Positions 907 through 63,193 are shown, counted from the stretch's first letter. The stretch is 64,000 bases of DNA from Malacoraja senta (GCA_038087875.1 CM075994.1:4030001-4094000); one strand, 5' to 3'. Translations and numbers: made by a program. Notes: generated by a model not told the origin, from the letters alone.

Positions 907-933
907 ATAAGAAGCTACAAGAAGTAGAAACAG
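907..933 (+). CDS. micro-exon 27 nt (x)KKLQEVET
   Basis: ttttcgcaacag|ATAAG...AACAG|gtgaac. Confidence 0.8.
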
Positions 934-3900
934 GTGAACCAGTTATTTCGTTAAATGAAACTGAGAAATAGGTCGCACCTGCAATAGAAACACTCGAGAA
1001 CTGAAAATTTACACAGTCAGCTGTTGAATTGAAGGCTGAGATCTATCAATCATACAGTAGTCTACAAGATGCGAATATCATGCATTGCCAATTAAAGAAA
1101 ACATGGTTATACGGATGGACATATTTCGTATTGAGTTTTCATCTGTTTCATTCAAACATTTTAACCTTCATAACACGAACAGCAATATTATATTTTAAAC
1201 CTTACCTATTGTTGTCCCTTTTTGTTTGAACATTTTAAACAGTAACGATACTTAAATTCCCAAGAAAGCCAGATCATTATAAAATAATATTAAACCTTGC
1301 TTGGAAGAAATAAAACAAAACTGTTCATGTCAATTTTCAGCATTATGTAACATCAATAATAGCATTCCTTATTTCACAATTCCACCTCACCCCTGGATTC
1401 TCCTAAACCTACGTAAGTGTGGTGAGGGCGGTGGGGGGGTGTTGATTGAGTGCTTCCAAATCACATACCATTTTGCATTGGCTACGGATATAAAACTACA
1501 GAGACACTCAGAGGAACACCAGAGGAACATCATAATTTTTTTGTCCTGATGCATGCATTCGTCAAACTATACATTAATTGCGCATTGGAATTAAAGCGAA
1601 ATGTTTAATATAGATTGGTGACCAAGAATCATTTCCCCAAAGCAAAATCATGAAACATATGATGTCTGTAGTAGATGCTAACTTGTTAGACAGCAGGCCC
1701 GGAATCATTTTTTTTAAAATTCAGGTGGAAGGCCAATAGCATTATTTACGGAACGATGTCAAGGAAAGGAGGTTACGAATATATCACTTTGATTTTTAGA
1801 ACTAAGAGATTTAAAAGAAAAGATAAAGGTATCAGGTAAGAAAATCATATGACCAATTTCAAATTATTACTCTTTCAAACTCACTTTCGTGAGACAATTT
1901 CACAGCAGATCAATCTCATGCACACAGCCTGAACAGTGAGCGTGCATGGCGATGTTTGTTACAGCTAGGCAATATTCCTATCTTGCGTCTGCCTCAAACA
2001 ACTTCAAGGCGTCGGTCACGATGCGATAGTGCGTGTTAATTATCGTATATATTATTACTTTGGAAGCTGAGTCGCCTCCATTGCTGTAAAACAAAAACGA
2101 CATTAGTCGTGTGCCGTCACAGGAATATTCAATTTTATTATTTTACCACAGTAATTGTACGATTTTTCATGCACATTTTTCCCAACGCAACCTCAACAAA
2201 ATAATTTCGTATTATTATCTGATAATAATATCTAAAATATATATAATTCCTGGTATGTTGCTCGTAAAAACAGCATATGAAGTCGTTGAATGTTATATTT
2301 TATTTCAGTGCTTTACTTTAAATAACATTTGCCCAATTGTTCTTTTTTTTCTTCTTTCAGCGGATGGATCACTACAGGCGAAATTCAGTAAGTGCCACAT
2401 TATTGTATCTGCGAGTGGGTGAAATTCTACTATTCAATCTCATATATATCGTGGACAATGCGTTCAGTACAAATATGTGAACATCGTGCATACCACATGT
2501 ATTGCAATCCATGAGCAAAATGGACATTTTGTTTTTGTAGATAGTCGTGTTTCGACTTGCAGAAAAGTCTTCCAATTGTTGCAATGAGAGAGTGTCATTC
2601 AACCAACCATACAAGTATCATTGTAGTCGTGTAACCTTAACTTCCATTGCGGCCGGATATTTGCGACCATAATGGACCCGTTAGGTTGATTTCATTTTAC
2701 TCAGACGTTACAATGGAGCCACGCTTCCACGAAGTAGTACAGCTTTGCAATGTCACATTGAATATCAGATGCGAAGCATCGGACCCGCAGCATTTGTGAA
2801 CATTACGCAAAACGAAGTGCAAGTCGCATTTAGGGCATTCAACGTTTGAATAAAAGAGACTTTGGATAGAATATCTACTTCGCAGTGTTCGGCATGCAGG
2901 GGGGCCTATTTGCAATTATTAATATTTCCCTTGGCAGCAATTCAGAGAAATAGCAGACTTTTTAAAAACTGACATTCCATTTCGAAACGCTCCTACTCTA
3001 CTGCCAAGACTGAAACATAACCTCGTTTCTCCGAGACTATTCTGCGTTGAACTGTTTCACATAAAGCAATGGTGATCCAAATTACCAACACAAAAAGAAG
3101 ACGCAAAGTCATGATTCTCAGTTACACATTACTCCATTTACAGCAATTGAAAATTGCCACGTGTTATTTTTAATTGCTCATTTGTTTTTCTTTCTTTAGT
3201 GGAAACACTTATGCAGATGAAAGGTCAGAACAGTTCAAACGCGATATGTGCGAATAAGATAGCAATGACGTTTGTGAAAAAATTGAATACCTCAAACCAA
3301 TATCTTGAACGTTCTTTTTTTTTTTGCTTTATCTAAAATGAACATATAATTCTTTGATTACCGTATCGTATGACATTGATTATGCAATATATAATTACGT
3401 GTGATTTATTTTTAAAAAATTGAAATATTATTCTGTCTGCTGGAATATAGTGTGAACAAATGATTACGTTCATGCAATATTAAACTAGAAACTACCGAGG
3501 TGTCTGGAAGAATAGTTCGGTATGCACAACGTGAGGAGACGAAATGTTTCTGATTTGAAGGTGAAGACCAGTATCTTGAAGCAGAAAGGTCTTTGCGGAA
3601 AATAATACATACACGATGCAATAGGTTTTACATGCGAGGAAAACGTTAGTGTGTATACAATGACGACACTGCAAATCTTGATTTGGGGTGATCAAAAGTG
3701 CAGTTTTGTTTAGCATGAAGATTAGAGAGAGTGGGTGAGAGAAATGTTCGTATATGTTGATAGGCAACTTATTAAAGTTCACAATGGTTTTGCGGAGCTA
3801 GATTATTACGAAGACGGGGGACACGTACACATTAGCCAGCTATAATGGAAATCTAAATTATAAAAACATTCATAATTAAATAGACTCAAGGGATTACTTT

Positions 3901-6900
3901 CGAATCTCGATGGTTCGTGACTGCAACTTGCAAATGTGGTGCAAAGAGAAAATTAATATTTTCACTGTTGCTATGTTAAAATAGGCTGTGCTTCAGCCAG
4001 AGCTAATTCGATTAAATCGTGGATCATAACACTAATTAGATATTTGGAACAGTGTTGTCGTTGTTCATATGGAAATGGAAATCTAAGTTCCGAAGTATAC
4101 TGTAATTACACATCGTCATGCAGCAGCATTGGCAAATTCGTTTCAACGTGTTAAGTTCCAATCTGCAGGTTCAATCTGAAGTTAAAATGTTTCTTAAAAC
4201 TTCACAACTGTCAGCCCTGAACAAAGATTAGCAAATATGATGAACACACGTTTCCTTCCAGTATGTTCCTTACCTTTGAGCTCCGTGCTGCGTAGGTTAC
4301 AACCTCATTCGGTAACGATTTTCGTGTTCCACGACCGAATTCGCAGATTAAATCGTGAACATAAGGTAGAATTGGAAGAAAGGCAAAAACTGACTCGCAC
4401 GTGTTTTGGGAAACATAATCATCAAAATACAATCAGCAATACATCACTGCACTAACAGTGTAATCGATTGTCCTCTTTTCAGAACTGCAAAGAATTAGTC
4501 GACGTTTTGGTATGTAATATAGCACGTCCCCTTCTTGAACACTCGATTGCAATAAGATAAATCCCAATCCATCAAACTATCTTACATGCTTATTACAAAC
4601 ATTACTACTCAACATTAAATATGTTTTCGTCGCTTGGATGCAAAATGCTTCAATGTTTGCTGATCTCGATTAATTTGCTATGACCGGTGCAATAATGACA
4701 TTATAATATGGAAACATTTCATTCAACAAATGAATCACTCATAAACATGTTGCTGCATCCGTGGTAATATTCGGTAACGGAAAATAGAACAATGGCATTG
4801 GAAGATGTTTTCCAACCAATGTATATTTCCTGGTTTGTAAATTAGTCACAAAATATTTCACCACTATATGTTCAATGATAAGATTTTTTCCATTTAGACG
4901 TTAAAAATATTTACATCTACGTGGAGAATTGAAACTAGGGATTGTCTACTTATCTTTTAATAATCTATTGATCTATTGCATGCTGCAATTGCAGAGGACA
5001 ATGTTGAAACAAAGATGAGAGGTAAACCTGCTTTCGGTGTGTTTGTTCATCAGTAGCAGACACAAATATTCCATGGGGCCACCAATGAGATCTGCTACCG
5101 AAGGTTGAAGAACTGTGTTATAAGCAGAAAGCTGCAAATCGTAGTTGTGGGGGATAGAGAATAGAGAGAGTGAGCTATGAATCAGCTCAATTTTCCTCAG
5201 AATCGGAATCGGCCAGTGACCTGAGACGTGAACGTTTTGCCTATCGTTGACACATACATAAGTATTTCTATCACTTTCGTTTATTATTTGCCGCAGACAA
5301 TTATTTTGTTATTTTTCTTTGTGAACGTATTAAGAAAATATATATTTCTGGATGTCAAAGTAAAGTTCTGAAACACCCTCTCCGCCCACCATTCTTTATT
5401 TCTCTCAAAGCAAGTTGCAACCGCCCGCTTCATGTGTTTACTTTTCACAGTCTGGAAAGTGCTGTCAGCGTACGACGTTAAACGATGTATCGGAAACATG
5501 GAAAAGTTTCTCCAACAGTTTGCTGACGCTTGTAACTATGTATTTTGTATAAGAAAGATTTATAAACAATAGCCCAGTTTAAATTTCCAGTTTGGAATTC
5601 ATTGACGATTCAGCGTGTTATGATCTCTTGGTTAATTCCTATCAGTCGCAACGCACTCAGCTTAATTTCACATTCCAACAGTTTGAGACTTCCTTTACCA
5701 TCATCCATTGCTGACTTAACCGCCGAACTTCCAAACAGCTGAACGCACCAGCTAAATGCTGAAATTTGAAGATCTGAATCTATGAAATGTACTTGTTCCT
5801 CATTTACAACTTTTTTAAAGTTCCACGTAGGAACAAACGTTTATAGAAGCAACAGGCAGAAAATTATGAACCCTCATTTTATATAAATCGTAAAACAGTA
5901 CTGTTGAAGATCATTAGTCTTTGTAATGTTTTGCAGAAATTGAATCGCTGAATATGGCACTGCAGAGCGTAGGTGAGGCGAAATTTTCTTTAGATAGCTA
6001 AAAAGCAACACTACAAAATTGATTTATACTACGATAAAATGTGAAAATTAAATTGACACTGCATTAAGTCTAGCTATTCACTTTAAATTGCGACTGGATC
6101 TGGAGTAATTAAATCATTACGGTTTAGTATATTAAAGAGACCAAAACTCACATTTTAATCAAACTAGGTTCTGCCATTCAAAAGAATAAAATAACATTTG
6201 TCAATTAATGAATCCGTGCTTCATTAAGCTTCGCAACCTTCTATGAGTTTATTTAGTCCCTCGCCGCAGGATATTTCTGCCCAGCCACTGCACTTAACAA
6301 AGGCGCATGCCATCTTCAACTTACTTCAACATTCTACCTGTAAGACTCAGGCGTGCTATAAGTAGACCTACGGGGAAGATGTCACCAATGATTCTGCACG
6401 CAATCACCAAATACAAAATGAGTGCATTTCAGCCACACAATTGTCTGCGTAATGTGTACCAACACGTTTACTTGTGGCACTTTCAATATTCAAATTGATT
6501 ACATTTCCTTATATCGAGTCATGAATAATAATGTGCTAATCTTAGTCACATTACAGAATCATATACTTTGTTATGCATCGCTTTCCAAATGTTTTTTTCA
6601 ATGCAAACATATGATGCAATAATCTGGTAATCTATCAATATAAAGTAATCGATAATGTCAGCAATTTTAACTAATCGTCACTGTTCCTTCCAAGAAACTA
6701 AATTGCGCCAGAAAGAAGCAGGTGAGTACTCGAAATATATAAAATAATCGTTGTATAATTTGCACCACTTCTTCAAAATGTCTGAATTCATTCATTGTTT
6801 ATAATGATACCTACAATACCTTTATGTCTCTGGGGCAATTGATCGTTGCGACTGTTATACTGTGATATCACTGTAGCTGCAATGTAACAGTGCGTTCGTA

Positions 6901-9900
6901 ATTAATATCATTTTAGAACTGGACACAAAATGTAAAACTCCTGGTGAGTAATTGTGTGATGATTTGTACGAACTGGATGAAGACTATGAATGTATTGTAT
7001 GTACTTATTATGTTTGTACCCACTAGAAACAAGGAACGAATTACGTTATTCGCAACTTGATGTACGATTTAACGTATGCTATTATCACCACTGAATACAT
7101 GCACTCACCTTTGGAAAATTGCAAAGCGCGGCGACAATATAGTTTGCATCAGAACCACTGATGAAAGGTAATGCATGTCAGTTCAGCATGGATTCTTAAT
7201 CCCTTTATTGCAATGTGCAAGTTGGCAGAACATTGGAGATCAGAACAAATGTGTGTTTTCTTCTAACGTTGAACATGGCAATAGATGGCCCATTTATCAT
7301 CTGGTTCATTGAATTTGTTAACTGTACGCTCAATCTAATCCTCTGAAGGTATGAACGGTGGATTGTCTGAATACATTAGATCATCAAGCACCAATTTATA
7401 ATATGTCACGAATTGCAAATGTTCTTGCCATATTCACGCCATCGACCCCTCACAGTTTCTACAGCGCATCTAAACATTAAAACTACTTTGCACCTGCCAA
7501 TTAATCTACATACTACCGTCTTTCGGCTGTGAGGAAAACACCCGAATATACATTGGAAGGCGATATCTTGTAGTGTGTCCCAGTCAACTGCACACACAGA
7601 GCACCCGAAATCAAGATTGAACCCTGGTCGCAGCGGAGTGAGGCTGTCGTTCTATCACCTTCGCCGCTCTTTCGCTCTGTCAGTAAAGCTAGTGCGGGGA
7701 TGTTGATGAATTATTTCCCATCAGGTATGAAGATTAGAGCCGGGGATACGTTCCCAACTTGAAAATGGCTTCTAGGTTTTTCATCCAGACCGCTGCATTT
7801 CGAACAACTTGACTTCTCTGCTCGGAAATATTATTTTTTAAACATATTAATCCTCATCAGATGGGAAAAAGTCTCTTGAATTTAATGTGATCTCTGAACG
7901 ATGAAAGATGCTTTCTCAGATCTTGATTTCAGTGGTTGCCTCGACGTTGTACTGGCCAGTCGCAGATCGATACTGTTCATACATAGCCCCTTAGATCTTG
8001 CATGCTGATGCCGACTCCACGTACTAAATTTTATTCCCATTTAATGGTTCTTTATCTTAGGTTAAATCCTTTATTCGATGGAAGGCAAATTGATACACGA
8101 GTTCAAGATTTCCATTCATACCGCAAAGTGATTTACTGCGATTTAGAATTAGGCACTAAAAAATAATAATAATTTTACCTCTAAAAGTATATCGTAGCTC
8201 GAATATCCCGACATTGGTAACAGTTGCAGAGTGATATTTACTTTCACAATCAGCTATATTTCAGGTTTCATTCTGTCATTATCATTTGCTTGTATTCTTA
8301 TTTTTGCCGCGCAGATGAAAGAACGACTGATCTCAGAAACGGTAAAATAAATTGCACTTCCGAAAAGAAACAATGAATTATCTTTACGCTCGTAATCATT
8401 GTTTCATAAGTTAATTTTGCTCGGTTTTCCATCTGCATATTTTATACATATATCAATTGCATGTAATTGCATACTAAAATTCTTATTGAAGAGTTGATAA
8501 AATGTTCTCCTTTTTTAAAAACAGAACTTGACCAGCTTCGCCAAAGCAATAGTTAGTATAAAAGTCAAACTCTTTTTGATTCATCTATTTAATGTGAAAA
8601 TAGATTTCATATGCGAAAGTGTGTATGGGATGTTATGGAGTGGACAAAACGGTCTGCGTGTGTCATTATGCAAGTACTTTAATTTTCTCTTTAGTATCAT
8701 TAATTACTATGCAAACATCTGTAACTGAATGATGTTTGCTTCTGCCATGGACATGCAAATTACATAATTCTGGCCGAAAGTTGATTATGACGGTAACATA
8801 TTATGTTATCCTCGGGTTAATACTTCCACCATTATTATATTTCGCGTTTATGGAAAATATGTTTTACAATAAATGGTGCGATATTCTCTGCTTCATAACA
8901 TTCCCATATGTTCACCAGAAGAAATGATCAACCAGAAGAACATCTGAGAGACAATTCACTCAAATTGATACTCACCCTTCCAGCCAAATAAACATAAATA
9001 TTTCCCTAGATTCGTGAAGAATTGCTGGATTATGTTATTATTTATTTCTGCAGAGGATATGCTAGAGAAAAAAGACAAAGGTAAGTTACTCTTGTGTCGT
9101 ACAGCAAACTCGAAAAATTTGTCTTTCCCGAAATATTCTTGTCGACTTAGCATTATGCAAATTCACTTATGTATTTGCCTTTAAACTAACAGATTGAAAA
9201 TTAAATTATTCAGGAACGGTTTGCATTAATGTGTAAACTGCAAATAATAAATACATGTTTAATCTGGAGGATCCGGGGTAGATCGATTGCGCAGAATCGT
9301 ATAATCTTCGATAAAGATCATTTAACTTACCCTGAACATCACCCCGTGATTTTATTCATCCAAAAGCATCATGCCAATTTCATCGGCACGACGTGACCAG
9401 TTTTACTTATGAAGAAACATGGCATGAATGAAAATGATACATTATTTCAGGGGATTGTGGTTATTTGCCGATACGCATTAGATTTAATAAATACATGAAT
9501 TGGGAATACAGGCTAGCGTTGCACATAATAAGCAAGATCGGTATTCCGAAAAACACAAGGAATCATGGGATTTGGCAAAGGCCATTCGCCATAAAGAAAA
9601 AGCAAACTAAGCACTGGCTGAAGAAACTGTGCATACGTTATTATTTTTATTCATAATTTATGCGTAAAAATATATTTAATCTGAGGAACGGGGGGTGCCG
9701 TGTGGTCACATTATAGGGAAATTAAGATGTTCCAGACTGAAACACAACAATGATAGTTTCTGAGTCGAATTTCACTGTTCTGTTAATGTCAAGGCAATGG
9801 AATTCTTCAGCCTCATCTATGAATACGAATGAGCAATAAAATTCTCGATTCCAGAGAGACTGCCATAAATGGTCAACTCCTCACCCCCCAAAGGAACAGG

Positions 9901-54900: not shown

Positions 54901-57900
54901 TATTTTAATTATCAGCACAGGCTTCTATTGAGGCAAATTAAACTTTGATTTGAGAAGTAAATGTATGTGGAAACGTTTTAAAAAACCCGAACAACTGATG
55001 TAAGAGTGCTTTCTCTTTTAGAGTTGAAAGAAAACTGCGCAACAGGTGAATTGATTTCCACGTGTTTGTTTTCCAATCCATTCTATTGCGTCTTCCTCGA
55101 ATTGGATCTACAATCTGAAACAAATATGCACCTGTTAATTACTCTGAGATCATGAATGCTATCAATGACTGAATTTTCAGTAAGCGAAAAGCAAATGGAT
55201 TCATCCATAAGTAAATAAAGATCTGAAATCATTTTGGTAGACCATTAACAACATTTCGCATGACATATAACAGTAGAAATCACCGAAGAGCTATAGTTTC
55301 CACAATGCTTATTGCTGTATCTTGTACAGCAATAGAATACAGAATACAGCAACAAACACTGCTATTTGGATATAGCCGTTTCCGTTCAGAATCATGCCAG
55401 CAAGACGAAAGAGTACAAAGCTTTGATCAAAGCAGCACTTGTTATAGATTGGCCAGAATGAACAACAGCAGAACAGTCCAGATGAAACTATCATTGAAAG
55501 AAATTGAGGAAAGTTAGGTCGAACAACTTGAAGATAATGTTGTCACATTCTGAGCGGCACACTAGCGCAACGGTAGAGTTGCTGTCCTACACCGCTGACC
55601 CGCTGAGTTACTCGAGCACTTTGTGTCTATATCTGTTATATACCAGCATCGCCAGTTCCTTTCACTATGTCTTTAACCATTCATAGAAACATAGAAAATA
55701 GGTGCAGGAGGAGGCCATTCGGCCCTTCGAGCCAGCACGGCCATTCATTGTGATCATGGCTGATCGTCCCCAATCAATAACCTGTGCCTGCCTTCTCCCC
55801 ATATCCCTTGACTCCACTAGCCCCTAGAGCTCTATCTAACTCTCTCTTAAATCCATCCAGTGACTTGGCCTCCACTGCCCTCTGTGGCAGGGAGTTCAAT
55901 AAATTCACAACTCTCTGGGTGAAAACGTTTTTTCTCACCTAAGCCTTAAATGACCTCCCCTTTATTCGCCACACAGTTCCGAATGTCTTCGTTAACCAGT
56001 GATATTTAGTGACATTCGAAGTTGGCATAAACAGCTCAAGAACACTGTATCCCAAATATAGTGCTATATGTACGTTTTGTACAAATTTACACGCCGTGTG
56101 ATAAAATGCACAAATAAATCCCTCTTCCCAAAGTAGTTTCTTCTGCGTTTCGAAATGGGAAATAGCCTTTCCCATGCGACTTAAACATTAATGATAAAAT
56201 CCCATTTGACTCGACATTACTCCAAAACATATCCATATAACCATATAACCATATAACCATAACAACACGGAAACAGGCCATCTCGGCCCTTCAAGTCCGT
56301 GCCGAACATTTTATTATTATTATATTTTTTTTAAATTAAAAATAAATACTTCCCCCTAGTCCCATCTACCTGCACTCAGACCATAACCCTCCATTCCTTT
56401 CCCGTCCATATACCCATCCAATCTATTTTTAAAGGAAAACATCGAACCTGCCTTCACCACTTCCACTGGAAGCTCATTCCACACAGCTACCACTCTCTGA
56501 GTAAAGAAGTTCCCCCTAATGTTCCCCCTATACTTCTGTCCCTTAATTCTCAAGTCATGTCCCCTTGTTTGAATCTTCCCTACTCTCAATGGGAACAGCT
56601 TATCCACGTCCACTCTGTCAAACCCGCTCATAATTTTAAAGACCTCTATCAAGTATCGTCATCCTGGAAGCTTCAACTACCAGATCATCGATTACTTTCA
56701 AGAATGATATCCGTCCTCAAACAGACTTTCTGCTCACCTTTTCACAGTTGTCACTGCATGCCATATCCCCACATGTATTTGCCCCCATATCGACAAATCG
56801 CTTACCGTAATTACGAGTAACTGGTTTGCTTACGAGGAGTTAATACACATCTCAAAAGTCGGAAACATAATCCGCTGGATATGCAATCACTAAAATTACT
56901 TATTAGGCTCGAAGCATTCCCATATCAAATAAAAAACTGCGTTTATTATTTCCAGCATAAAGAAAACCGTATAACCCGCCTTCATTACATTCTCTCGGAA
57001 CTCTTACACAACTAACAGGAGGCATCAGCGAACGTCTGCTATTGAGGTCCGGAGATCGTTCGGTAGATTTCATTACCCGTTCTCTCAATGAAGAGTCCCC
57101 AGTTCATGGTAACATTTTGCCTTTCAGGATTATTCACGTCTCTATTTGAGCTCTTTAAGTCTATATCAAAAATCATTCTGCATATGCCTTACTTTTATCG
57201 CTGCGAATGTTATCTTGACGTTCATAATGTGACTACCTGCAGAGCCGGATGAGAATGATTGATCGATCATATATTTCAGACGAAGATAAGCTGTCAGCTA
57301 TTCAAAGAGACATAGGTAAGTTACTCCAATAAAATGTGACATATTTATGGCTAATGTTGAACTTATGGGACTACATTTCAACAAGATGTTCTCAACCCAG
57401 GTGTAATTGACTGAAAGCAAACCATTGCATTATCTTTAATATATCATTTACTTTCATGTTCACAGTGCAACTGTTGCGTCTGAAAGATAAAGGTACAAGT
57501 TATCCGGCCAAACATGATGTTGTGACTAATATTTTGTTATGTGATAAAATAGGACGGATCAAAAATAAGCGGGATATTCCTGATAGAAACAACAGCAAAG
57601 AGGATGCTATAAAATAAAATAATGAAGACACCGAATGAGGAGAAATTGTGATGCGTTTAGTCACAACTTAATTGTTGTGGTTTAAATATAAAAGTGACGT
57701 GACTTGATGATGACAATAAAAGCATTAATAATCAGTAAAACGATGTAATAAAGAGCAGAACTCAAATAAAATAACAATTAACAAGTTGTTCGTTTATACA
57801 CCAGTGTTGACTATCGGTTAAGGGGACATTGGGGGGGGGGGGTGCAGACCCTCATTAGTTCAATGTATCAAATAGGCAAAGAGTATAGTAGAGTGCAAGA

Positions 57901-60900
57901 GGTAGAAACCCTGAAATGATACTGCAATCACTTTAACCTGAGTCGAAAATACACTTAAATTTGAATTAAAAAACAATGAGAATTCCACGGATTTTCATTG
58001 GCTTTGCATTGCTTACAAAGTGGGAGTCGTGAACAGTTCATGCATGATTACCACGGCGGGCGGTGGGGCTGCAACAGTCATTGCTACTACATAAAGAAGT
58101 GTGCAACAAAAGCTCTTAATATAATTTTACATTACTTATATTTATTTTAATTAATGCGCGGGATTTTTTCTTTAGAACTTGAAGAACTTCGTCGACAGAA
58201 TAGTAAGCTATACTATCTGATGATCACAATTTCCACCAACCATTTTCTTTTCCTGTGGTATTCAGAATGACGGTAACGTTGCAGCACTGATATTTATATA
58301 TTTATATATTCCCGTAAATTAGAAAGCACAGTTGAAATTCATGCAAAACGTGAAGTATTGGAATCAATGGCGCAGAATGGAAATGCAAATAAATAATAAC
58401 GTTCAGTTTGTTTTGAGCAGGCTCGTTGAAATAAAACAACATTAGATTCATCAGGTTACATCAATGCAAATTGTCCCAACAAAAAAAACATGTTAGTATT
58501 GATCACAATCAGCATCAGGTAGAAGCTAATGTCATAGTTTGAATTTCAATGGGCCGTAATTTAACTAAATATATCGGAAATTTACCTGGCCAAAGTGCAT
58601 CGACCATAGGGATTGGCTGAGGGGACCAGGGAAGTAAAAGCATGAAAATGCATGTCCGTGTTAATTCCTCGCAGTTGCACCAAATGTTATCAGAGTAACA
58701 ATTCATTAACACGAGCTCGGAAAAGTACTATTCATTTTTTTAAATGTGCTGCATTTTTGATGTTTTCTTTCAGGTAGATCCGTGCAGGAATGCGGTAAGA
58801 ACGCAAAACCAAATCAAAGATAAATATAATTTCAAACTGAGACTTCCTCTGTGCGTCGTTTAACTGTCCGCTTACATATTTTCAGAGAAAGAACTTTATG
58901 CAGCCAAATCAGGCACGTAAATATAAAATGACTTGGAAGACTTACAAAATGTAATTTCCGACAAAATGCAACAACAGACAACAGACAATAGACAATAGGT
59001 GCAGGAGGATCCCAGTCGGCCCTTCGAGCCAGCATCGCCATTCAATGTGATCATGGCTGATCATCCCCAATCAGTACCCCGTTCCTGCCTTCGGTTCGCA
59101 AGCCACGAGAACACATCCCAGACAATAACCATTACCGTGATTTTATTTAATTCGACTGATAGATGTTGTCTCACGATCTACAGAATATCACCAGGGACAA
59201 TAATTAAGCACAAGCAACTATAGCACTATTCCCAGATTTTTTTTCCCCAAGAAAAATATTGTTCAAATATAAAAATTGTCCCCTTTTGGTTTTCATGATA
59301 TATATTTCAATCATCCAATCCTGGAGTGCAGCATACGCAGCGCAATCGATACGCAAACACCTGAAATCAGACTTATGCAGATAACGTTGTGTAACCGGAA
59401 GAAAAATGTCATTGGCACAACGTCTAATAAGAACTGACGGAACATTTCTCCTCTGCTGTATGAATGTATTGCGATTGTCGTGTTATCCGAATTATAGTAG
59501 TAACATATATGGGGAAACATATCATTTTATCAGTTAATTAAAATTAAGGAGCAGCGGTATTGAATTCCAAATGGAAGCTATGAAAATTATTGTTTTGTAA
59601 TTTCAGAACTTGAAACTATTAAATCTGCGCTGAAGTCAGCAAGTAAGGGATTTCTTCTCCTGATGGTTGCGGAAATTTAAACCCAAAATACGTGGAAAGT
59701 CGGGATATCTGTGGAGAATTAATATGCATCTGAGAGGGAATTGGTTACAGAGAAAATACAGAACGAATTAAATGAGAGATTGATTTGAGAGATAGCATCA
59801 AAACAATGGGCGGCAAAGCATCATTCCATGCCGTTAGGAAATTAAACGACGAAATCGCAAATCTTTGAATTCATCTACAGCTTGCCTGAAGTGCAATATC
59901 AATAAAAAATGACAAACCTTCAGTATATGAACTTTTTGATGGAGTCTAATAAATGACAACTAATTGTATAATCCCTCATCGTCAAAACGCCCACTAATGG
60001 TCGACATGCTCTCTTCGCAAATAAAAAATAATGTGTCAGAAACGAAACGAAAACTGAATTTTGAATTCAGAAACTATATATTCGCATTATATGCAGAAAA
60101 TCTACATTTATCGGGTTAACCTATTCGTCCAGAATTTCTTCCACGTCATTGTCGAGGTAGATATATATGTCATCTAATACTATGCCAACATCTATTACTA
60201 TTGGCAGAACGTGGCTGATATCCGTTGTGCGGCCCATATTAACATATTTTACATTCATCGTTGTATTTTCCAAGACCTAACATTTCCATGGGTTCTTCAA
60301 AAATGTGCCCCTGATAGAGCAGGGGTTCCCAACATTTTTCGTCCGGTTTACCCTGGCAACCTTAATAGCACATAACATTGTTATTTCACTTATTTATGCG
60401 CAATTAATGATGAACATATACCAGAACCAAACACTGTCAGTCAATGAGAAAAAATATGTACAAAATCCAGAATCAACAAATTTTTAACCTGGGTAGGCGA
60501 AACTTACCGCATGGGGTTAATATTTACCCCAGGTTGGGAGCCCTTTTGATAGAGAAACAAAAGGTATGCCACTCCAATTGACTGCGTACAACTATGTTGA
60601 GTAATTAATGAATAAAAGGTTAAATCTGTCTTGGTTAAACTGGATATGAGAAATAGGGAGAAGAGTGCGGAACAAATTATATGCATTGTCAAGCAGCGCT
60701 CTTGTTTTACCCATGGAAAACCTGTCTAATTTAACTGGAGTGAACTCTGGTATTTTTGTATCGCACCTCTAAATCCTTTTTATTTTATTCTTCAATGTAA
60801 AGGAAAATGCTCAGAATACGTACTAACGTCGACATTTTATCCCAAAAGAGACTGATTTGCAAGTCAAAGAGGATGGTAATTAACACTAATACAGTTTTAA

Positions 60901-63193
60901 ATGCTATTTAAATGCTAATTTGGATCTATAACATTCACATTTTTGCAAGCTAAAAGTTGACCAAAATGTATTTGTTGGCATTTTCAACTCAGAACTTCAG
61001 AAACATGTAAAGAGCGATGGTGAGTGACAACAACATACCGCACGATTTTTCGCTGATTCATCTTGAAAAATGCCGAAACAGGCCTGCTGAAGCAACAAAT
61101 GTACATATTATTGCGACTCAATTCACCTCATTTGAAAGTTATTAAAATGTTGGAGACAGATAAGCCAATTTAGACAATGCCAAATGTCCCACTCCCCAGC
61201 CTTTCAGGGTAACATACCTATCGATGTTTCACGATCTTAAAATCCACAGGCCCCGCTGTTGCAGATTCGATCCCCGGCAAAGGGATCGCAAGCTCCGCGA
61301 TGTTAAAGTCCCACAGACTCCCGCGGCTTGGAGCGCCGGGTCAGTCTCGAGGAAAGGTCGCCAACTCCACGATGTTAGGCCGTAGTGCGGACGGAGATAC
61401 GATACGGAAAATAATCGCATCTCCGTCGAGGTAAGAGAGTGAAAAAAGTTTCCCCCAATCTCCCCCCCCCCCCCCGCACACCCCCCCAACATAAAACCAA
61501 CCAAGGTACACTAAAACATAATTTAACACTACCTTAAAATAACAAAACCATAAGAAAGGACAGACATTGGTGAGGCAGCCATTGCTGGTGGCGCCACTGG
61601 CGCAGTATTAAATCACCCATATTCTTTGCAACAGCGCCGCTTCCAATATTCTGCTAAGTGATAGCCTGTGATGGCATTCTAATACACGTATTGTCAGAAG
61701 ATTTTTTTTTTGTTCCATGCCAATCTTGCGCATGGTCAGATGGACTACATTTAAGTAAATATCGAAAAGCGAATATGAGGGAAAAGAAGAGACAAGACCA
61801 CGACATAAGAAATCTTGTGCTCAACTGCAGGAGAAGGGAATAAATGAATAACAAAGATAAGAACAGTATGACATTTCAACTTTGTCGTTGTTGCTTAATG
61901 CAAGTTGTTTCAATTTTTATACGTTGCAGAGGAACAGATACGTGAAACACAAGAGGGTAAAACAATTCGTTTTTATCAATTTTCAACCATCGTTTCTGTG
62001 GCTGGTATGAATGTAGAACAAATGCTGTGAAGAAATGCTGCCATTGTGTCAGTGTCAGACAAAAGTGTTTTATGAAGGACCCGTCATGAACATAGTGGAA
62101 TGCGAGGAAGCATTGAGGGACTGGGTGAGCTATTCCTGGTGCCTGCGATCTTGCACTTTCCTATGCAATTAAAATTATTCTTACAATGTCATTGGGCTGA
62201 ATGATAAGCGGCTGTTCTGTGGCGAGTTGTCGATTATCTGCACTGCTCATCAGAATGGACAAGACATTCAGCATCGCACCGAACACAATTGAATTTCAAA
62301 CCACGTGCGAGGACAAATGTCGACGCACGCGGTCAGTATCCCTGCCGGTTGATTTTTTTTTCTAAGATCTAATTCCGAAAGCTGAAAGCACGGAAACTAC
62401 CCTCTTCCCCAGCCTCTCCGCAGCCAGGCCACATTATGTTAATTGAGTTCACTCGACTACAGTTAAATATAAATATATGTGTATTATAATTCACATAATG
62501 GTTTAATCTACCAACATATATAATGACCGTCCTTTAAAAAAAGTGAGATGTTTTCTTTAGCTGAAATATTCAAATTATTTAAGTATTGTTCAATCGAATA
62601 TGTTTGCAAAGGACTTCAGACAAAGGCATGAGGTTTCTGCCTGTTAAGGCCTGATCAACTGCGTTCTGTTACTCCTCGCGTCAGGCCATAGCACTGCACA
62701 TCACTTGAGAATTCCACGGCTGAAATAAGATCATTTTACGATCGTTTTCAGTCTTATTTTTTAATAATAAATATTTAATTTATCGTAAAAATTGCAAGAG
62801 GTACACTTTTTCTACAGGGACAAACACACATTTGATTGGCACTTTAAATGTTACCATTGACCTAATAGATAACGATGATATATTTCCTAGAACGTAAGAA
62901 AATAGAAGCGATTCGACTGAACGTTGGTAAGAACACTGATTTCCCATGTATTTTATTGCTTTGGTTATTTACGTGAAAGCAATTCCCATTGTTTTATCGA
63001 TTAATCTAAGCTCCAACCGCATTTTCAAATAGACGCAATTTCACTAAATAACTGAGTCAAACGATCACAACTAAAATCCTTTTGTGCATTGCGCAATCAC
63101 TGATCTATGATATTATGAAATATTATTGAAAATATAACATGTAAAACTCTGCCTCTTATATTGTAGAGGAACTACTCCGTCGGCAGGAAACAG
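907..63193 (+). CDS. Internal part of a multi-micro-exon gene encoding a long coiled-coil protein (46 phase 1-1 exons of 18-36 nt, about 438 aa; both ends outside the window)
   Basis: Manual splice-site reading. Each exon has a pyrimidine tract plus AG, a GT donor, a length divisible by 3 and an open phase-1 frame. The joined peptide begins DKKLQEVET-ELRDLKEKIKVS and ends ERKKIEAIRLNV-EELLRRQET, with heptad-like Leu/Ile spacing. Confidence 0.9.
1800..1835 (+). CDS. micro-exon 36 nt ELRDLKEKIKVS
   Basis: gatttttag|AACTA...ATCAG|gtaaga. Confidence 0.88.
2361..2387 (+). CDS. micro-exon 27 nt ADGSLQAKF
   Basis: cttctttcag|CGGAT...ATTCA|gtaagt. Confidence 0.88.
3200..3223 (+). CDS. micro-exon 24 nt METLMQMK
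   Basis: ttctttctttag|TGGAA...GAAAG|gtcaga. Confidence 0.7.
4483..4509 (+). CDS. micro-exon 27 nt ELQRISRRF
   Basis: tcctcttttcag|AACTG...TTTTG|gtatgt. Confidence 0.85.
4995..5021 (+). CDS. micro-exon 27 nt EDNVETKMR
   Basis: aattgcag|AGGAC...GAGAG|gtaaac. Confidence 0.8.
5937..5972 (+). CDS. micro-exon 36 nt EIESLNMALQSV
   Basis: gttttgcag|AAATT...CGTAG|gtgagg. Confidence 0.88.
6695..6721 (+). CDS. micro-exon 27 nt ETKLRQKEA
   Basis: ttccttccaag|AAACT...AGCAG|gtgagt. Confidence 0.88.
6917..6943 (+). CDS. micro-exon 27 nt ELDTKCKTP
   Basis: cattttag|AACTG...TCCTG|gtgagt. Confidence 0.85.
7450..7670 (-). mobile_element. decayed tRNA-derived SINE
   Basis: similar to 34130-34320. Confidence 0.6.
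8315..8341 (+). CDS. micro-exon 27 nt DERTTDLRN
   Basis: tttttgccgcgcag|ATGAA...AAACG|gtaaaa. Confidence 0.8.
8525..8551 (+). CDS. micro-exon 27 nt ELDQLRQSN
   Basis: ttttttaaaaacag|AACTT...CAATA|gttagt; paralogous to exon 58176. Confidence 0.8.
9054..9080 (+). CDS. micro-exon 27 nt KDMLEKKDK
   Basis: tatttctgcag|AGGAT...CAAAG|gtaagt. Confidence 0.9.
10329..10364 (+). CDS. micro-exon 36 nt ELETLRSTLHDT
   Basis: tattctag|AGTTG...TACAG|gtgatt. Confidence 0.85.
11155..11495 (+). mobile_element. CR1 3' end fragment
   Basis: ESRTRGHRFKMKG; tail gggccgaagggcctgtttcc. Confidence 0.85.
13013..13039 (+). CDS. micro-exon 27 nt DQHEQCSIN
   Basis: attctttag|ATCAG...CAATG|gtgagt. Confidence 0.85.
13477..13494 (+). 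CDS. micro-exon 18 nt AQSLNV
   Basis: tttattttcag|CACAA...CGTGG|gtaaga. Confidence 0.75.
14627..14653 (+). CDS. micro-exon 27 nt ENETLQIKL
   Basis: cttgcttacag|AAAAT...ACTCG|gtaatg. Confidence 0.8.
14960..15280 (-). mobile_element. decayed CR1 3' end
   Basis: degenerate FTQNVASAGNAL, FKRILER. Confidence 0.65.
17636..17659 (+). CDS. micro-exon 24 nt ELKSKLKA
   Basis: catctccag|AATTG...GGCCG|gtaagc. Confidence 0.82.
19019..19054 (+). CDS. micro-exon 36 nt GEEGKDLAAKCI (or 9-nt GEE using the internal donor at 19028)
   Basis: atttacag|GAGAAGAAG|gtaagg, or extended to ...TATAG|gtacag. Confidence 0.7.
   Translation, partial: EKKVRTWLLNV
19195..19220 (+). other. 26-nt exon-like unit, 1 nt short (xLNFLLGQI if one base is restored)
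   Basis: tgtttgcag|GTTGA...GATCA|gtaagt; as written it gives GGT TGA (stop). Confidence 0.5.
20010..20323. mobile_element. partial PIF/Harbinger-like MITE
   Basis: CGACC/GGTCG-rich internal repeats; terminus AAGTGGGACAGG; other end missing. Confidence 0.55.
20813..20830 (+). CDS. tentative micro-exon 18 nt (x)KCWRL
   Basis: gctgac...tgcatttag|TTAAA...ACTAA|gtatgt; weak pyrimidine tract; not counted among the 46. Confidence 0.35.
   Translation, partial: LNVGD
21068..22163 (+). mobile_element. CR1-type LINE, 5'-truncated (RT C-terminus and 3' UTR)
   Basis: PQRSVLGPQIFTIYIN, KFVDDTKLGG; (TTCTATGT)n tail. Confidence 0.93.
22626..24201 (+). mobile_element. Tc1/mariner DNA transposon, full length, transposase disrupted
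   Basis: TA flanks at 22624-25 and 24202-03; TIR CAGTGCATTCAGAAAGTATTCAG / CTGAATACTTTCTGAACGGACGG; peptide remnants MKTKEL, ETKIELFG, VKHGGGSIM, FQSDNYPKHT, WPSQNTDLNSIEHL with frameshifts and stops. Confidence 0.95.
24675..25100. mobile_element. Penelope-type terminal repeats in inverted arrangement (non-autonomous element)
   Basis: arm 24675-24770 is the reverse complement of arm 24966-25060; motif CTGAAGAAGGGTCTCGACCCGAAAC; other copies near 405-495, 30180-30265, 31786-31880, 38760-38835, 48825-48880, 54120-54370 and 55590-55670. Confidence 0.75.
25649..25675 (+). CDS. micro-exon 27 nt (E/K)CKELLQKT
   Basis: tttttctttaag|AATGC...GACAA|gtaagt. Confidence 0.88.
26696..26722 (+). CDS. micro-exon 27 nt MRQILLKNA
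   Basis: ttgctttcag|TGCGA...TGCAG|gtaaat. Confidence 0.88.
27777..27812 (+). CDS. micro-exon 36 nt EIIQLQTKIKEA
   Basis: ctcttttctag|AAATT...AGCAT|gtgagc. Confidence 0.85.
28050..29100 (-). mobile_element. very decayed Gypsy-like pol/integrase remnant
   Basis: minus-strand remnants only loosely resemble integrase motifs; many stops. Confidence 0.3.
29240..29435 (+). mobile_element. SINE 3' portion
   Basis: gctggtcggcgtggactcggtggg...taaactaaactaaac. Confidence 0.75.
29875..29892 (+). CDS. micro-exon 18 nt SDSRIP
   Basis: ttatgccag|CGGAT...TCCAG|gtacag. Confidence 0.6.
31087..31119 (+). CDS. micro-exon 33 nt GSFNRDDEPFN
   Basis: ctctgac...tttcgttctcaacag|GCTCA...CAATG|gtaatg. Confidence 0.55.
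31434..31460 (+). CDS. micro-exon 27 nt ECKKLLQAS
   Basis: ttcttatcag|AATGC...GAGCA|gtgagt; paralogous to 25649. Confidence 0.9.
32262..32288 (+). CDS. micro-exon 27 nt MRQLLVKDI
   Basis: ttctctcgcag|TGAGA...TATCG|gtgagt; paralogous to 26696. Confidence 0.9.
32558..33737 (-). mobile_element. CR1-type LINE, 5'-truncated
   Basis: KFADDTKLGG, YRALVRSHLEYCVQFWSP; (TCTATTG)n tail. Confidence 0.95.
34035..34320 (-). mobile_element. tRNA-derived SINE
   Basis: B-box-like GGTTCGATCCC on the minus strand; (TAAAC)n tail; related copies at 7450-7670, 29240-29435, 36030-36200 and 49500-49650. Confidence 0.85.
34434..35484. mobile_element. non-autonomous DNA transposon, 1051 bp
   Basis: TIR TAGCAATGTTACAA / TTGTAACATACCTA; direct repeat AATGTAG on both sides. 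Confidence 0.85.
36660..36695 (+). CDS. micro-exon 36 nt EIGKLNARVQDA
   Basis: ctgttacag|AAATA...TGCTG|gtaagc. Confidence 0.88.
37373..37399 (+). CDS. micro-exon 27 nt EEGLRAKDA
   Basis: atcttacag|AGGAA...TGCAG|gtaaaa. Confidence 0.85.
37500..37745 (+). mobile_element. decayed CR1 RT fragment
   Basis: aagtttgtggatgatccgaagataggtgg resembles KFADDTKIGG. Confidence 0.65.
39415..39440 (+). other. 26-nt exon ELESLIMTK, 1 nt short of the expected 27 nt
   Basis: ctttcctctctcag|AACTG...CTAAG|gtaatc; occupies the third slot of a 36-27-27-27 module. Confidence 0.75.
39625..39850 (+). mobile_element. decayed CR1 3' end
   Basis: tttttcacacagacggtcgtg resembles FFTQRVV. Confidence 0.55.
40110..40875 (-). 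mobile_element. decayed CR1 internal fragment (endonuclease/linker region)
   Basis: reverse-complement similarity to 42953-43700. Confidence 0.7.
41235..41261 (+). CDS. micro-exon 27 nt (V)SDLRRKEQ
   Basis: ctcttttacag|TGAGC...ACAAG|gtaaat. Confidence 0.88.
41556..41591 (+). CDS. micro-exon 36 nt EIEKLKKSLQDA
   Basis: gatttcag|AAATA...CGCAG|gtgagt. Confidence 0.9.
42953..45495 (+). mobile_element. CR1-type LINE ORF2 (partial endonuclease, RT, 3' UTR), frameshifted
   Basis: EPTREKAILHLV, GSDHNML, NYRPVSLTSVVGKMLE, DFQKAFDKVPH, FADDTKLGG. Confidence 0.96.
45559..45585 (+). CDS. micro-exon 27 nt ESVVRKKDT
   Basis: catttgcag|AATCT...TACAG|gtaata. Confidence 0.85.
46010..46640 (-). mobile_element. 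nested, decayed non-CR1 LINE 3' ends
   Basis: (GATTCA)n and (TAA)n tails followed by tttatt, typical of antisense LINE termini. Confidence 0.45.
47476..48310 (-). repeat. retroelement 3' end with (TATCG)n tail plus GC-rich interspersed repeat
   Basis: microsatellite tail at 47476-47497; GC-rich body; a related GC-rich repeat lies at 61230-61600. Confidence 0.6.
48404..48430 (+). CDS. micro-exon 27 nt DMSDHLKTD
   Basis: tattacag|ATATG...CGATG|gtgagt; paralogous to 60993. Confidence 0.88.
49006..49032 (+). CDS. micro-exon 27 nt DEKLKEAKT
   Basis: branch site TACTAAC at 48981; tttttcttacag|ACGAG...AACGG|gtagga. Confidence 0.9.
49780..49815 (+). CDS. micro-exon 36 nt ELEQLEAIRADI
   Basis: tatttccag|AACTC...TATCG|gtgagt. 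Confidence 0.9.
49977..50003 (+). CDS. micro-exon 27 nt EKLLRMKDA
   Basis: ttttcatag|AGAAA...TGCCG|gtaaac. Confidence 0.85.
51163..52190 (-). mobile_element. CR1-type LINE, 5'-truncated
   Basis: SGVPQGSVLGPQLFVIYINDLD, FADDTKLGG; same tail as the 32558 copy. Confidence 0.95.
52374..52400 (+). CDS. micro-exon 27 nt EIKALQKSN
   Basis: tttatttgcag|AAATT...GAATG|gtatgt. Confidence 0.88.
52700..54020 (-). mobile_element. older CR1-type LINE fragment with an internal ~50-bp tandem duplication (53650-53752)
   Basis: FADDTKIFGG, LRPHFQYCEQLW. Confidence 0.85.
55022..55045 (+). CDS. micro-exon 24 nt ELKENCAT
   Basis: ttctcttttag|AGTTG...AACAG|gtgaat. Confidence 0.82.
55682..55965 (-). mobile_element. 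CR1 3' end fragment
   Basis: near-identical to the reverse complement of 45230-45490. Confidence 0.9.
56233..56652 (-). mobile_element. CR1 3' end, different subfamily
   Basis: IEVFKIMSGFDRVD, TRGHDLRI, FFTQRVVAVWNELP; (ATGGTTAT)n tail. Confidence 0.88.
57280..57315 (+). CDS. micro-exon 36 nt DEDKLSAIQRDI
   Basis: atatttcag|ACGAA...CATAG|gtaagt. Confidence 0.9.
   Translation, partial: TKISCQLFKET
57466..57492 (+). CDS. micro-exon 27 nt VQLLRLKDK
   Basis: tgttcacag|TGCAA...TAAAG|gtacaa. Confidence 0.85.
58176..58202 (+). CDS. micro-exon 27 nt ELEELRRQN
   Basis: ttttctttag|AACTT...GAATA|gtaagc. Confidence 0.88.
58774..58794 (+). CDS. micro-exon 21 nt SRSVQEC
   Basis: ttttctttcag|GTAGA...ATGCG|gtaaga. 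Confidence 0.78.
58975..59090 (-). mobile_element. CR1 3' UTR/tail fragment
   Basis: matches 51163-51270. Confidence 0.85.
59607..59642 (+). CDS. micro-exon 36 nt ELETIKSALKSA
   Basis: aatttcag|AACTT...AGCAA|gtaagg. Confidence 0.88.
60320..60546. mobile_element. hAT (Charlie-like) MITE
   Basis: TIR CAGGGGTTCCCAAC / GTTGGGAGCCCTTT; 8-bp TSD TGATAGAG. Confidence 0.88.
60849..60875 (+). CDS. micro-exon 27 nt KTDLQVKED
   Basis: branch site TACTAAC at 60821; ttatcccaaaag|AGACT...GGATG|gtaatt. Confidence 0.82.
60993..61019 (+). CDS. micro-exon 27 nt ELQKHVKSD
   Basis: ttcaactcag|AACTT...CGATG|gtgagt. Confidence 0.88.
61230..61600 (-). repeat. GC-rich interspersed repeat
   Basis: shares gctccgcgatgtt and poly-C/A-rich architecture with 47930-48310. 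Confidence 0.55.
61930..61956 (+). CDS. micro-exon 27 nt EEQIRETQE
   Basis: acgttgcag|AGGAA...AGAGG|gtaaaa. Confidence 0.82.
62891..62926 (+). CDS. micro-exon 36 nt ERKKIEAIRLNV
   Basis: tatttcctag|AACGT...CGTTG|gtaaga; paralogous to 49780. Confidence 0.88.
63167..63193 (+). CDS. micro-exon 27 nt EELLRRQET
   Basis: atattgtag|AGGAA...AACAG|gtacga; paralogous to 49977. Confidence 0.85.

Follow-up and report, generated by a model that had tools for sequence, protein, structure and literature searches.

The 64,000 nucleotides (nt) of Malacoraja senta DNA analysed here (the window) carry on the + strand, between positions 907 and 63193, a long series of very short exons. This series very probably belongs to a genuine skate protein-coding gene, whose middle and 3′ portions it covers with about 47 phase 1-1 micro-exons that encode a long, apparently cytoplasmic, helical heptad rod. 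An earlier note had proposed 46 such exons with AG/GT borders, joining to 1314 nt, and peptide location, splice context and scanning all bore this out. All 31 peptides that it quoted were located on the + strand, in ascending order and at the coordinates that they imply, and a scan combining a splice-site position weight matrix with amino-acid composition recovered 15 additional exons between 10.4 and 41.5 kb. The resulting 46 in-frame exons join to 1314 nt, or 437 codons.

A polypyrimidine tract and AG lie before every exon and GT after it; each exon consists of 2 nt closing a codon, a run of whole codons and 1 nt opening the next. All 46 are symmetric, being multiples of 3 in phase 1-1, with lengths of 27 nt (29 exons), 36 nt (11), 24 nt (4), 21 nt (1) and 18 nt (1). 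Coding sequence accounts for 2.1% of the span of the array; the introns, which contain transposon debris, have a median length of 0.9 kb, a mean above 1 kb and a maximum of 6.6 kb. None of the 46 exons contains an in-frame stop, and the 3′ half alone runs for 243 codons without one (chance ~1e-7); read in its two alternative frames, the joined sequence has 31 and 40 stops. The codon at the junction is Glu in 27 of 45 cases. Because it is usually G/AA or G/AG (the slash marking the junction), the splice-site consensus coincides with a charged flank position of the heptad.

The strand and phase of the array stand out clearly in scans of the whole window. At a threshold of at least 20 bits, with splice matrices trained on the exons of the earlier note, 35 candidates were found on the + strand in phase 1-1, against 7 apiece in the two remaining + phases and 0 on the minus strand in all three phases. 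An untrained filter returned 26 candidates in the phase and strand of the exons, versus 5-10 in the controls.

Orthologous models and conservation

A protein search with the N-terminal joined piece matched XP_055520638.1 of the little skate Leucoraja erinacea (hereafter the skate model), a protein of 115 amino acids (aa) automatically named 'SMC3-like', at 93% identity. This model is the exact concatenation of 12 window exons, from the one at 3200 to the one at 13013, two of which had been found by the scan only. Its start ATG is split A/TG across an 800-nt intron, its stop arises by donor read-through after the exon at 13013 (GE, then stop), and conserved in-frame micro-exons extend at least 8.8 kb upstream and at least 9.8 kb downstream of it (L003 10001-21500; L003 is the orthologous locus, 31.5 kb of L. 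erinacea CM054048.1). The skate model is therefore truncated at both ends.

L003 is collinear with positions 2-25780 of the window at ~90% DNA identity, in keeping with the earlier proposal of a chondrichthyan locus. All 21 exons in the compared region retain AG, GT and exon length, and at 6.1% divergence all 84 splice bases would stay unchanged with a probability of ~0.005. Gapped positions number 0 in 585 exon nt and 78 in the 150-nt flanks. Across 194 codons, the Nei-Gojobori method counted 14 synonymous and 11 nonsynonymous differences (Sd and Nd), with proportions per synonymous and nonsynonymous site (pS and pN) of 0.12 and 0.024 and a ratio of nonsynonymous to synonymous divergence (dN/dS) of 0.18 (Fisher p = 5e-5). 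This substitution pattern is that of purifying selection on exactly the predicted frame, including exons that lie outside the start and stop of the RefSeq model.

When the 115-aa skate protein was run exhaustively with HMMER against 1.84 billion representatives, one match came back, XP_069775413.1 of the electric ray Narcine bancroftii (the Narcine model), which has 663 aa and is named 'putative leucine-rich repeat-containing protein DDB_G0290503 isoform X17'. Residues 1-187 of the joined window peptide align with its residues 422-597 at 74% identity, covering 18 exons. The sole internal gap in this alignment comprises 8 residues and corresponds to the exon at 16374-16397, which is intact in skate. 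Upstream of the window, too, the gene is built of micro-exons: Narcine residues 389-413 are matched, in the same order, by further exons at L003 1182-1208, 4248-4271 and 5724-5750. The 135-aa C-terminal joined piece had no match among protein candidates of 74-236 aa. Both the SMC3 and the leucine-rich repeat (LRR) names are fillers, and in these searches the rod protein has no detectable relatives outside batoids. As to the earlier description of a hidden gene, the gene is real; it is less hidden than supposed, as automated RefSeq models in two relatives already join many of its exons.

Mapping the transcriptome run X24 over 4400-10399 touched only a repeat at 9.7-10.0 kb and nothing on the nine exons of that interval; the aligner may miss 27-nt exons, and this result is uninformative rather than negative. 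The same interval is spanned by contigs of three other species at ~93-94% identity.

The exon series and its introns

The series opens with KKLQEVET (27 nt, 907-933; AG/GT, phase 1-1), which is kept at L003 8477-8503 and corresponds to the Narcine model from residue 422. It is followed by ELRDLKEKIKVS (36 nt, 1800-1835), recognized by its splice context, by ADGSLQAKF (27 nt, 2361-2387), whose last base is the A of the split ATG in the skate model, and by METLMQMK (24 nt, 3200-3223), the first coding exon of that model; all three are kept in L003 and present in the Narcine model. ELQRISRRF (27 nt, 4483-4509) belongs to both models, is identical in L003 and has no differences listed in the three other species. 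The exons from there to 13039 are likewise found in both models and kept in L003: EDNVETKMR (27 nt, 4995-5021), EIESLNMALQSV (36 nt, 5937-5972), ETKLRQKEA (27 nt, 6695-6721), ELDTKCKTP (27 nt, 6917-6943), DERTTDLRN (27 nt, 8315-8341), ELDQLRQSN (27 nt, 8525-8551, with an A/GT donor), KDMLEKKDK (27 nt, 9054-9080), ELETLRSTLHDT (36 nt, 10329-10364), and two exons also found by the scan, EAKLGKKEE (27 nt, 12848-12874) and DQHEQCSIN (27 nt, 13013-13039), with which the skate model ends. In the orthologue, the helix is predicted to break at the KTP/DE junction after 6943. Within the exon at 9054-9080, all three related species and L. erinacea differ from the window by 9067 G>C (Glu to Asp); because C is common to these four, the species of the window probably carries the derived base.

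The remaining exons of the compared region were found by the scan. AQSLNV (18 nt, 13477-13494), ENETLQIKL (27 nt, 14627-14653) and ELKSKLKA (24 nt, 17636-17659) are kept in L003 and present in the Narcine model. The cassette exon VEKAMEIK (24 nt, 16374-16397) is kept in L003, whereas Narcine isoform X17 leaves it out precisely from boundary to boundary. GEEGKDLAAKCI (36 nt, 19019-19054), flanked by AG/GT there as here, and ECKELLQKT (27 nt, 25649-25675) are both identical in L003.

Beyond 25.7 kb, the exons are identified by their splice context, mostly together with the scan. MRQILLKNA (27 nt, 26696-26722) has both lines of evidence, and EIIQLQTKIKEA (36 nt, 27777-27812), which ends in T, has its splice context. 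The next two exons are paralogues of earlier ones: xCKKLLQAS (27 nt, 31434-31460) of the exon at 25649, and MRQLLVKDI (27 nt, 32262-32288) of the exon at 26696. These two and EIGKLNARVQDA (36 nt, 36660-36695) are further supported by exon comparison. From 36.6 kb on, the exons fall into modules of 36-27-27-27(24/21) nt, ~38-39 residues each. The first of these contains EEGLRAKDA (27 nt, 37373-37399), VSDLRRKEQ (27 nt, 41235-41261) and, between them, the 26-nt exon ELESLIMTK (39415-39440), which has good AG/GT borders and would shift the frame if included.

EIEKLKKSLQDA (36 nt, 41556-41591) begins the regular 36-27-27-27 modules, all of whose exons have both splice context and scan evidence, and is followed by ESVVRKKDT (27 nt, 45559-45585), DMSDHLKTD (27 nt, 48404-48430) and DEKLKEAKT (27 nt, 49006-49032). 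The next module consists of ELEQLEAIRADI (36 nt, 49780-49815), EKLLRMKDA (27 nt, 49977-50003), EIKALQKSN (27 nt, 52374-52400) and ELKENCAT (24 nt, 55022-55045). After it come DEDKLSAIQRDI (36 nt, 57280-57315), VQLLRLKDK (27 nt, 57466-57492), ELEELRRQN (27 nt, 58176-58202, A/GT donor) and SRSVQEC (21 nt, 58774-58794), then ELETIKSALKSA (36 nt, 59607-59642, A/GT donor), KTDLQVKED (27 nt, 60849-60875), ELQKHVKSD (27 nt, 60993-61019) and EEQIRETQE (27 nt, 61930-61956). ERKKIEAIRLNV (36 nt, 62891-62926) and EELLRRQET (27 nt, 63167-63193) are the last exons seen; given the module pattern at this point, the gene runs on beyond the window.

Exons of the same length are 37-43% identical, compared with 26-30% for intron blocks, and self-BLAST of the window finds only transposon copies in introns, with no intron similarity between modules. 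Because the exons are alike above the intron level while no intron similarity is left, the four-exon modules of the 3′ half are old. A recent tandem array was considered and rejected, as self-BLAST revealed no exon-bearing duplicates.

Two exons in the 3′ part are defective. The exon at 27777-27812 ends in T instead of G and, joined to the AA that opens the exon at 31434, creates a TAA stop at the junction. The earlier statement that the joined exons are free of stops thus holds within every exon and fails at this one junction. Of five downstream exons tested, the terminal T yields T/AA or T/AG stops with three (31434, 36660 and 37373) and Leu with the other two (32262 and 41235), and skipping the exon at 27777-27812 restores G/AA (Glu) at the new junction. 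The second defect lies in the 47th exon, at 39415-39440, which occupies the third-exon slot of its module and is one base short; its inclusion leads to a TGA in the next exon. Either defect is avoidable by skipping one symmetric exon. Because symmetric exons can be lost or skipped in frame, both defective exons may be bypassed by skipping in this species.

The introns and base composition of the locus have features of their own. The observed/expected ratio of CpG is 0.90-0.92 in unique intron and exon sequence at 37-38% GC and 1.02 in the exons, that is, barely depleted; it is 0.37-0.54 in intronic transposon copies and 0.77 overall in the orthologous skate locus. Depletion this weak would not be expected in the gene body of a globally methylated vertebrate. 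A CR1-type reverse-transcriptase fragment lies in an intron at 44161-44625 on the + strand (Pfam RVT_1, E = 1.4e-14), its best named relatives being from Callorhinchus milii (68%), then turtles and birds. The high CpG ratio had raised the idea of a non-vertebrate source, which was rejected first on the closeness of this fragment to Callorhinchus and then on the 93% identity of the little-skate protein. CR1-type repeat copies occur at 21.0-22.2, 32.6-33.7, 44.3-45.5, 51.2-52.2 and 55.7-56.0 kb, and a Tc1/mariner-type DDE_3 transposase fragment (23463-23903, + strand) sits inside the 6.6-kb intron. Two segments, 9400-10200 and 7400-7800, are very high-copy interspersed repeats, with a summed contig depth in the three relatives up to ~1000-fold above single-copy, and 9582-9968 shows many internal deletion variants of ~220-385 nt. 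An intronic 51-nt tandem repeat (2.1 copies, 94% matches) is found at 53648-53753.

A predicted helical heptad rod

The composition and periodicity of the joined peptide are those of a heptad-patterned helix. It contains 15% Glu, 14% Lys and 13.5% Leu, with Pro, Gly and aromatic residues almost nil. The autocorrelation of hydrophobic residues is highest at a lag of 7 (+0.22) and rises again at 14 and 21; the best heptad register path scores 169.9 against 115 +/- 8 for shuffled sequences, with 21 register breaks. Exon size and heptad are related. The 36-nt exons place hydrophobic residues or Ala at positions 2, 5, 9 and 12 (a, d, a, d), and the 27-nt exons favour Glu1, Leu4 and Lys7. One 12-residue plus one 9-residue exon gives 21 residues, or three heptads in continuous register, and extra 9-residue exons produce register breaks.

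An AlphaFold2 (AF2) single-sequence model of the Narcine orthologue agrees with this pattern. Its mean predicted local distance difference test score (pLDDT) is 64, with helices at ~70-89. Residues 1-46 are modelled as disordered, residues 47-584 as a near-continuous helix with six short breaks, and the isoform-specific tail again as disordered; an all-helical model also speaks against the LRR name. Autocorrelation, register score and this orthologue model together uphold the prediction of a coiled-coil product, in the form of a heptad-patterned helical rod. With the helix starting at residue 47 and the window at about residue 432 of the orthologue, ~385 rod residues lie upstream of the window, 437 inside and more beyond. 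Judging from the electric-ray orthologue, the rod would measure well over 800 residues after its disordered head of ~46 residues.

That head is acidic/proline-rich and hydrophilic. We found no N-terminal hydrophobic segment (KD19 maximum -0.35) and no signal peptide in the Narcine orthologue. No transmembrane (TM)-grade segment was found in it either, the KD19 maximum of 1.35 occurring only in the isoform-specific tail and none preceding the rod. Searches of the Narcine orthologue for Pfam domains gave no match, including to Ig, B30.2, lectin, C1q, SMC and LRR domains, and Pfam on the joined C-terminal piece gave sub-threshold noise only, with no SMC domain; intronic ORFs gave such noise as well, apart from the RVT_1 and DDE_3 transposon fragments. 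Sequence searches of the PDB returned no match, and in particular no relative of the Narcine orthologue. There is no B30.2/PRY-SPRY domain in the window or in the Narcine orthologue; the true C-terminus of the gene lies outside the window.

Micro-exon cassettes and the nature of the gene

A gene of this design could vary the length of its product by exon choice. The exons are symmetric cassettes: one orthologous isoform lacks exactly the exon at 16374-16397, and the name 'X17' implies at least 17 isoforms. The symmetry of the exons would therefore account for the many annotated isoforms in Narcine, and these observations support the cassette design proposed in the earlier note. Its stronger claim, that any subset of exons can be skipped in frame, needs qualifying. 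Symmetry and the precise omission in X17 support it, but the T-ending exon at 27777-27812 creates stops with three of five downstream exons and the skip of a single 9-residue exon breaks the heptad register. Frame neutrality therefore extends to any skip except those involving the T-ending exon, and heptad-register neutrality to particular exon combinations only. Exons of this kind can be added, lost or skipped with the frame intact. We propose that they are spliced together in this species and that cassette usage sets rod length. The helices would pair into a dimeric or oligomeric coiled coil that is often interrupted by stutters and hinged in a few places, and the protein may act as a cytoplasmic scaffold or tether.

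Several observations weigh against this interpretation. Substitutions are 4.3% in exons and 6.1% in intron flanks, a modest gap (p = 0.08), and the models in the relatives are automated predictions, both of which seem to be cut short where they read into an intron. For this species itself, run searches returned runs of genomic sequence and, besides these, only X24, a small run of the same study. The 25 in-frame exons after 25.7 kb are supported by internal evidence, the orthologue comparison covering the 5′ 21, and it is in this 3′ part that both the T/AA junction and the 26-nt exon occur, which could reflect decay or assembly errors. Register breaks come about every 21 residues, so that an uninterrupted canonical coiled coil is not assured, and the C-terminus outside the window may bring a terminal domain or tail anchor.

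The locus could be the batoid orthologue of a named, widespread vertebrate coiled-coil gene (centrosomal, golgin or CCDC) that has diverged beyond recognition. Coiled coils diverge fast, and an Atlas feature search places the Narcine orthologue nearest to CCDC170, TSGA10, HMMR, CCHCR1 and CEP128-type clusters, at 0.95-0.96. Its shared-feature counts of 132-147, however, fall below the ~170 typical of true family members, Pfam and PDB hold no match, the HMMER search ended in a single cluster and the NCBI names are only fillers; we consider such an orthology unlikely. Somewhat less likely still is that the gene, or its 3′ half, is decaying in this species and that the array is a relic without a full protein. 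The two defective exons, the less regular sequence of the middle exons and the lack of transcript evidence would all fit decay, but AG/GT is present in 46 of 46 exons, which have no internal stop, the 243 stop-free 3′ codons have a chance probability of ~1e-7, the 5′ 21 exons are under purifying selection and each defect can be avoided by one symmetric skip.

We give little credence to the idea of an immune-type protein, membrane-bound or secreted, whose cytoplasmic tail or stalk these exons would encode, whether of the BG/butyrophilin, type II lectin stalk, C1q or micro-exon gene (MEG)-like kind. The phase 1-1 split codon is the same as in the 21-nt heptad exons of chicken BG, phase 1-1 modules are typical of extracellular or immunoglobulin superfamily genes, and the C-terminus of the protein lies outside the sequence seen. 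Against this stand the hydrophilic, disordered head of the Narcine orthologue with no N-terminal hydrophobic or TM-grade segment, the lack of any Ig, B30.2, lectin or C1q Pfam match in it, and a helix that begins at residue 47, ~385 residues before the first exon of the window. A kinship or analogy with BG/butyrophilin tails, which the earlier note named as analogues, or with C-type lectin or C1q stalks is not supported, given this head and the missing signal peptide, TM segment and Pfam domain; nor is membership among MEG-like genes, given a batoid protein of at least 663 aa with no signal peptide. AT-rich DNA offers more than 300 raw short open AG...GT candidates per phase and strand, but that such intervals have merely lined up by chance has a vanishingly small probability; this explanation is refuted by the strand and phase controls, the order-preserving match to two independent protein models and the dN/dS of 0.18.

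Comparison with known systems places the skate gene among cassette micro-exon coiled coils while setting it apart from each of them. The cytoplasmic tail of chicken BG is encoded by dozens of serial symmetric micro-exons, the first codon split into one base plus two, that specify alpha-helical heptads; exon borders fall within the true heptads, genes differ in their number of exons and some isoforms read through an intron (PMC5938342; PMC8813856). The skate gene is like BG in its split-codon phase, in having micro-exons in series and in encoding heptads. In BG, however, the exons are 21 nt long (a few 18 or 24), so that each is one heptad and any skip keeps the register, whereas at 27 and 36 nt only 12 + 9 residues are neutral. 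Moreover, BG has a signal peptide, Ig-V and TM segment, none of which is found in the orthologue of the skate gene, and its tails comprise 27-37 exons, compared with at least 50 in the skate gene, whose introns are far longer and filled with transposable elements (TEs). Schistosome MEGs, as described in a preprint (bioRxiv 10.1101/2023.06.21.545858), carry most of their coding sequence in symmetric exons of very small size, with long introns between them, and produce protein variants by alternative splicing. The likeness to the skate gene ends with this symmetric design; MEGs are flatworm genes for small secreted proteins, whereas the skate gene is a vertebrate gene for a large protein with a strong heptad pattern and no signal peptide, and has no sequence relationship to them. 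Finally, rods of the CCDC170/TSGA10/HMMR/CEP128 type, its nearest Atlas neighbours, likewise have a very long helical rod behind a head and no enzymatic domain, but family-level similarity is not reached. Genes of this type, as far as is known, have ordinary exon sizes. The literature searched contained no described gene with 27/36-nt coiled-coil exons. In relatives the gene already exists as fragments in automated models, but it is undescribed; its kind, the cassette micro-exon coiled coil, is known.

The preferred reading, a real skate gene for an apparently cytoplasmic heptad rod, bears on splicing as well as on protein architecture. The exon-definition machinery of vertebrates has difficulty with exons under ~50 nt, and the micro-exons known so far mostly occur singly and depend on special factors. 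At least 47 micro-exons in series, under purifying selection in skates and electric rays, would be a test case for serial micro-exon recognition. The gene, which has at least 50 exons and probably about 100 in all, would be an extreme vertebrate example of a protein built almost wholly from micro-exons. In it, exon size tracks fold, 36 + 27 nt making three heptads, and symmetric cassettes would allow the length of a rod protein to vary and damaged exons to be tolerated. With the RefSeq models of its orthologues truncated and misnamed, the gene is under-annotated in cartilaginous fish genomes.

More tentatively, batoids may possess a small lineage-restricted family of giant genes, each with ~100 serial 27/36-nt symmetric micro-exons and kilobase-scale TE-rich introns, whose combinatorial splicing yields cytoplasmic coiled-coil rods of graded length; we regard this as possible, though less than probable. 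If true, the batoid family would be a vertebrate molecular-ruler system, and a natural stress test of exon definition in which many exons of <40 nt are recognized in series.

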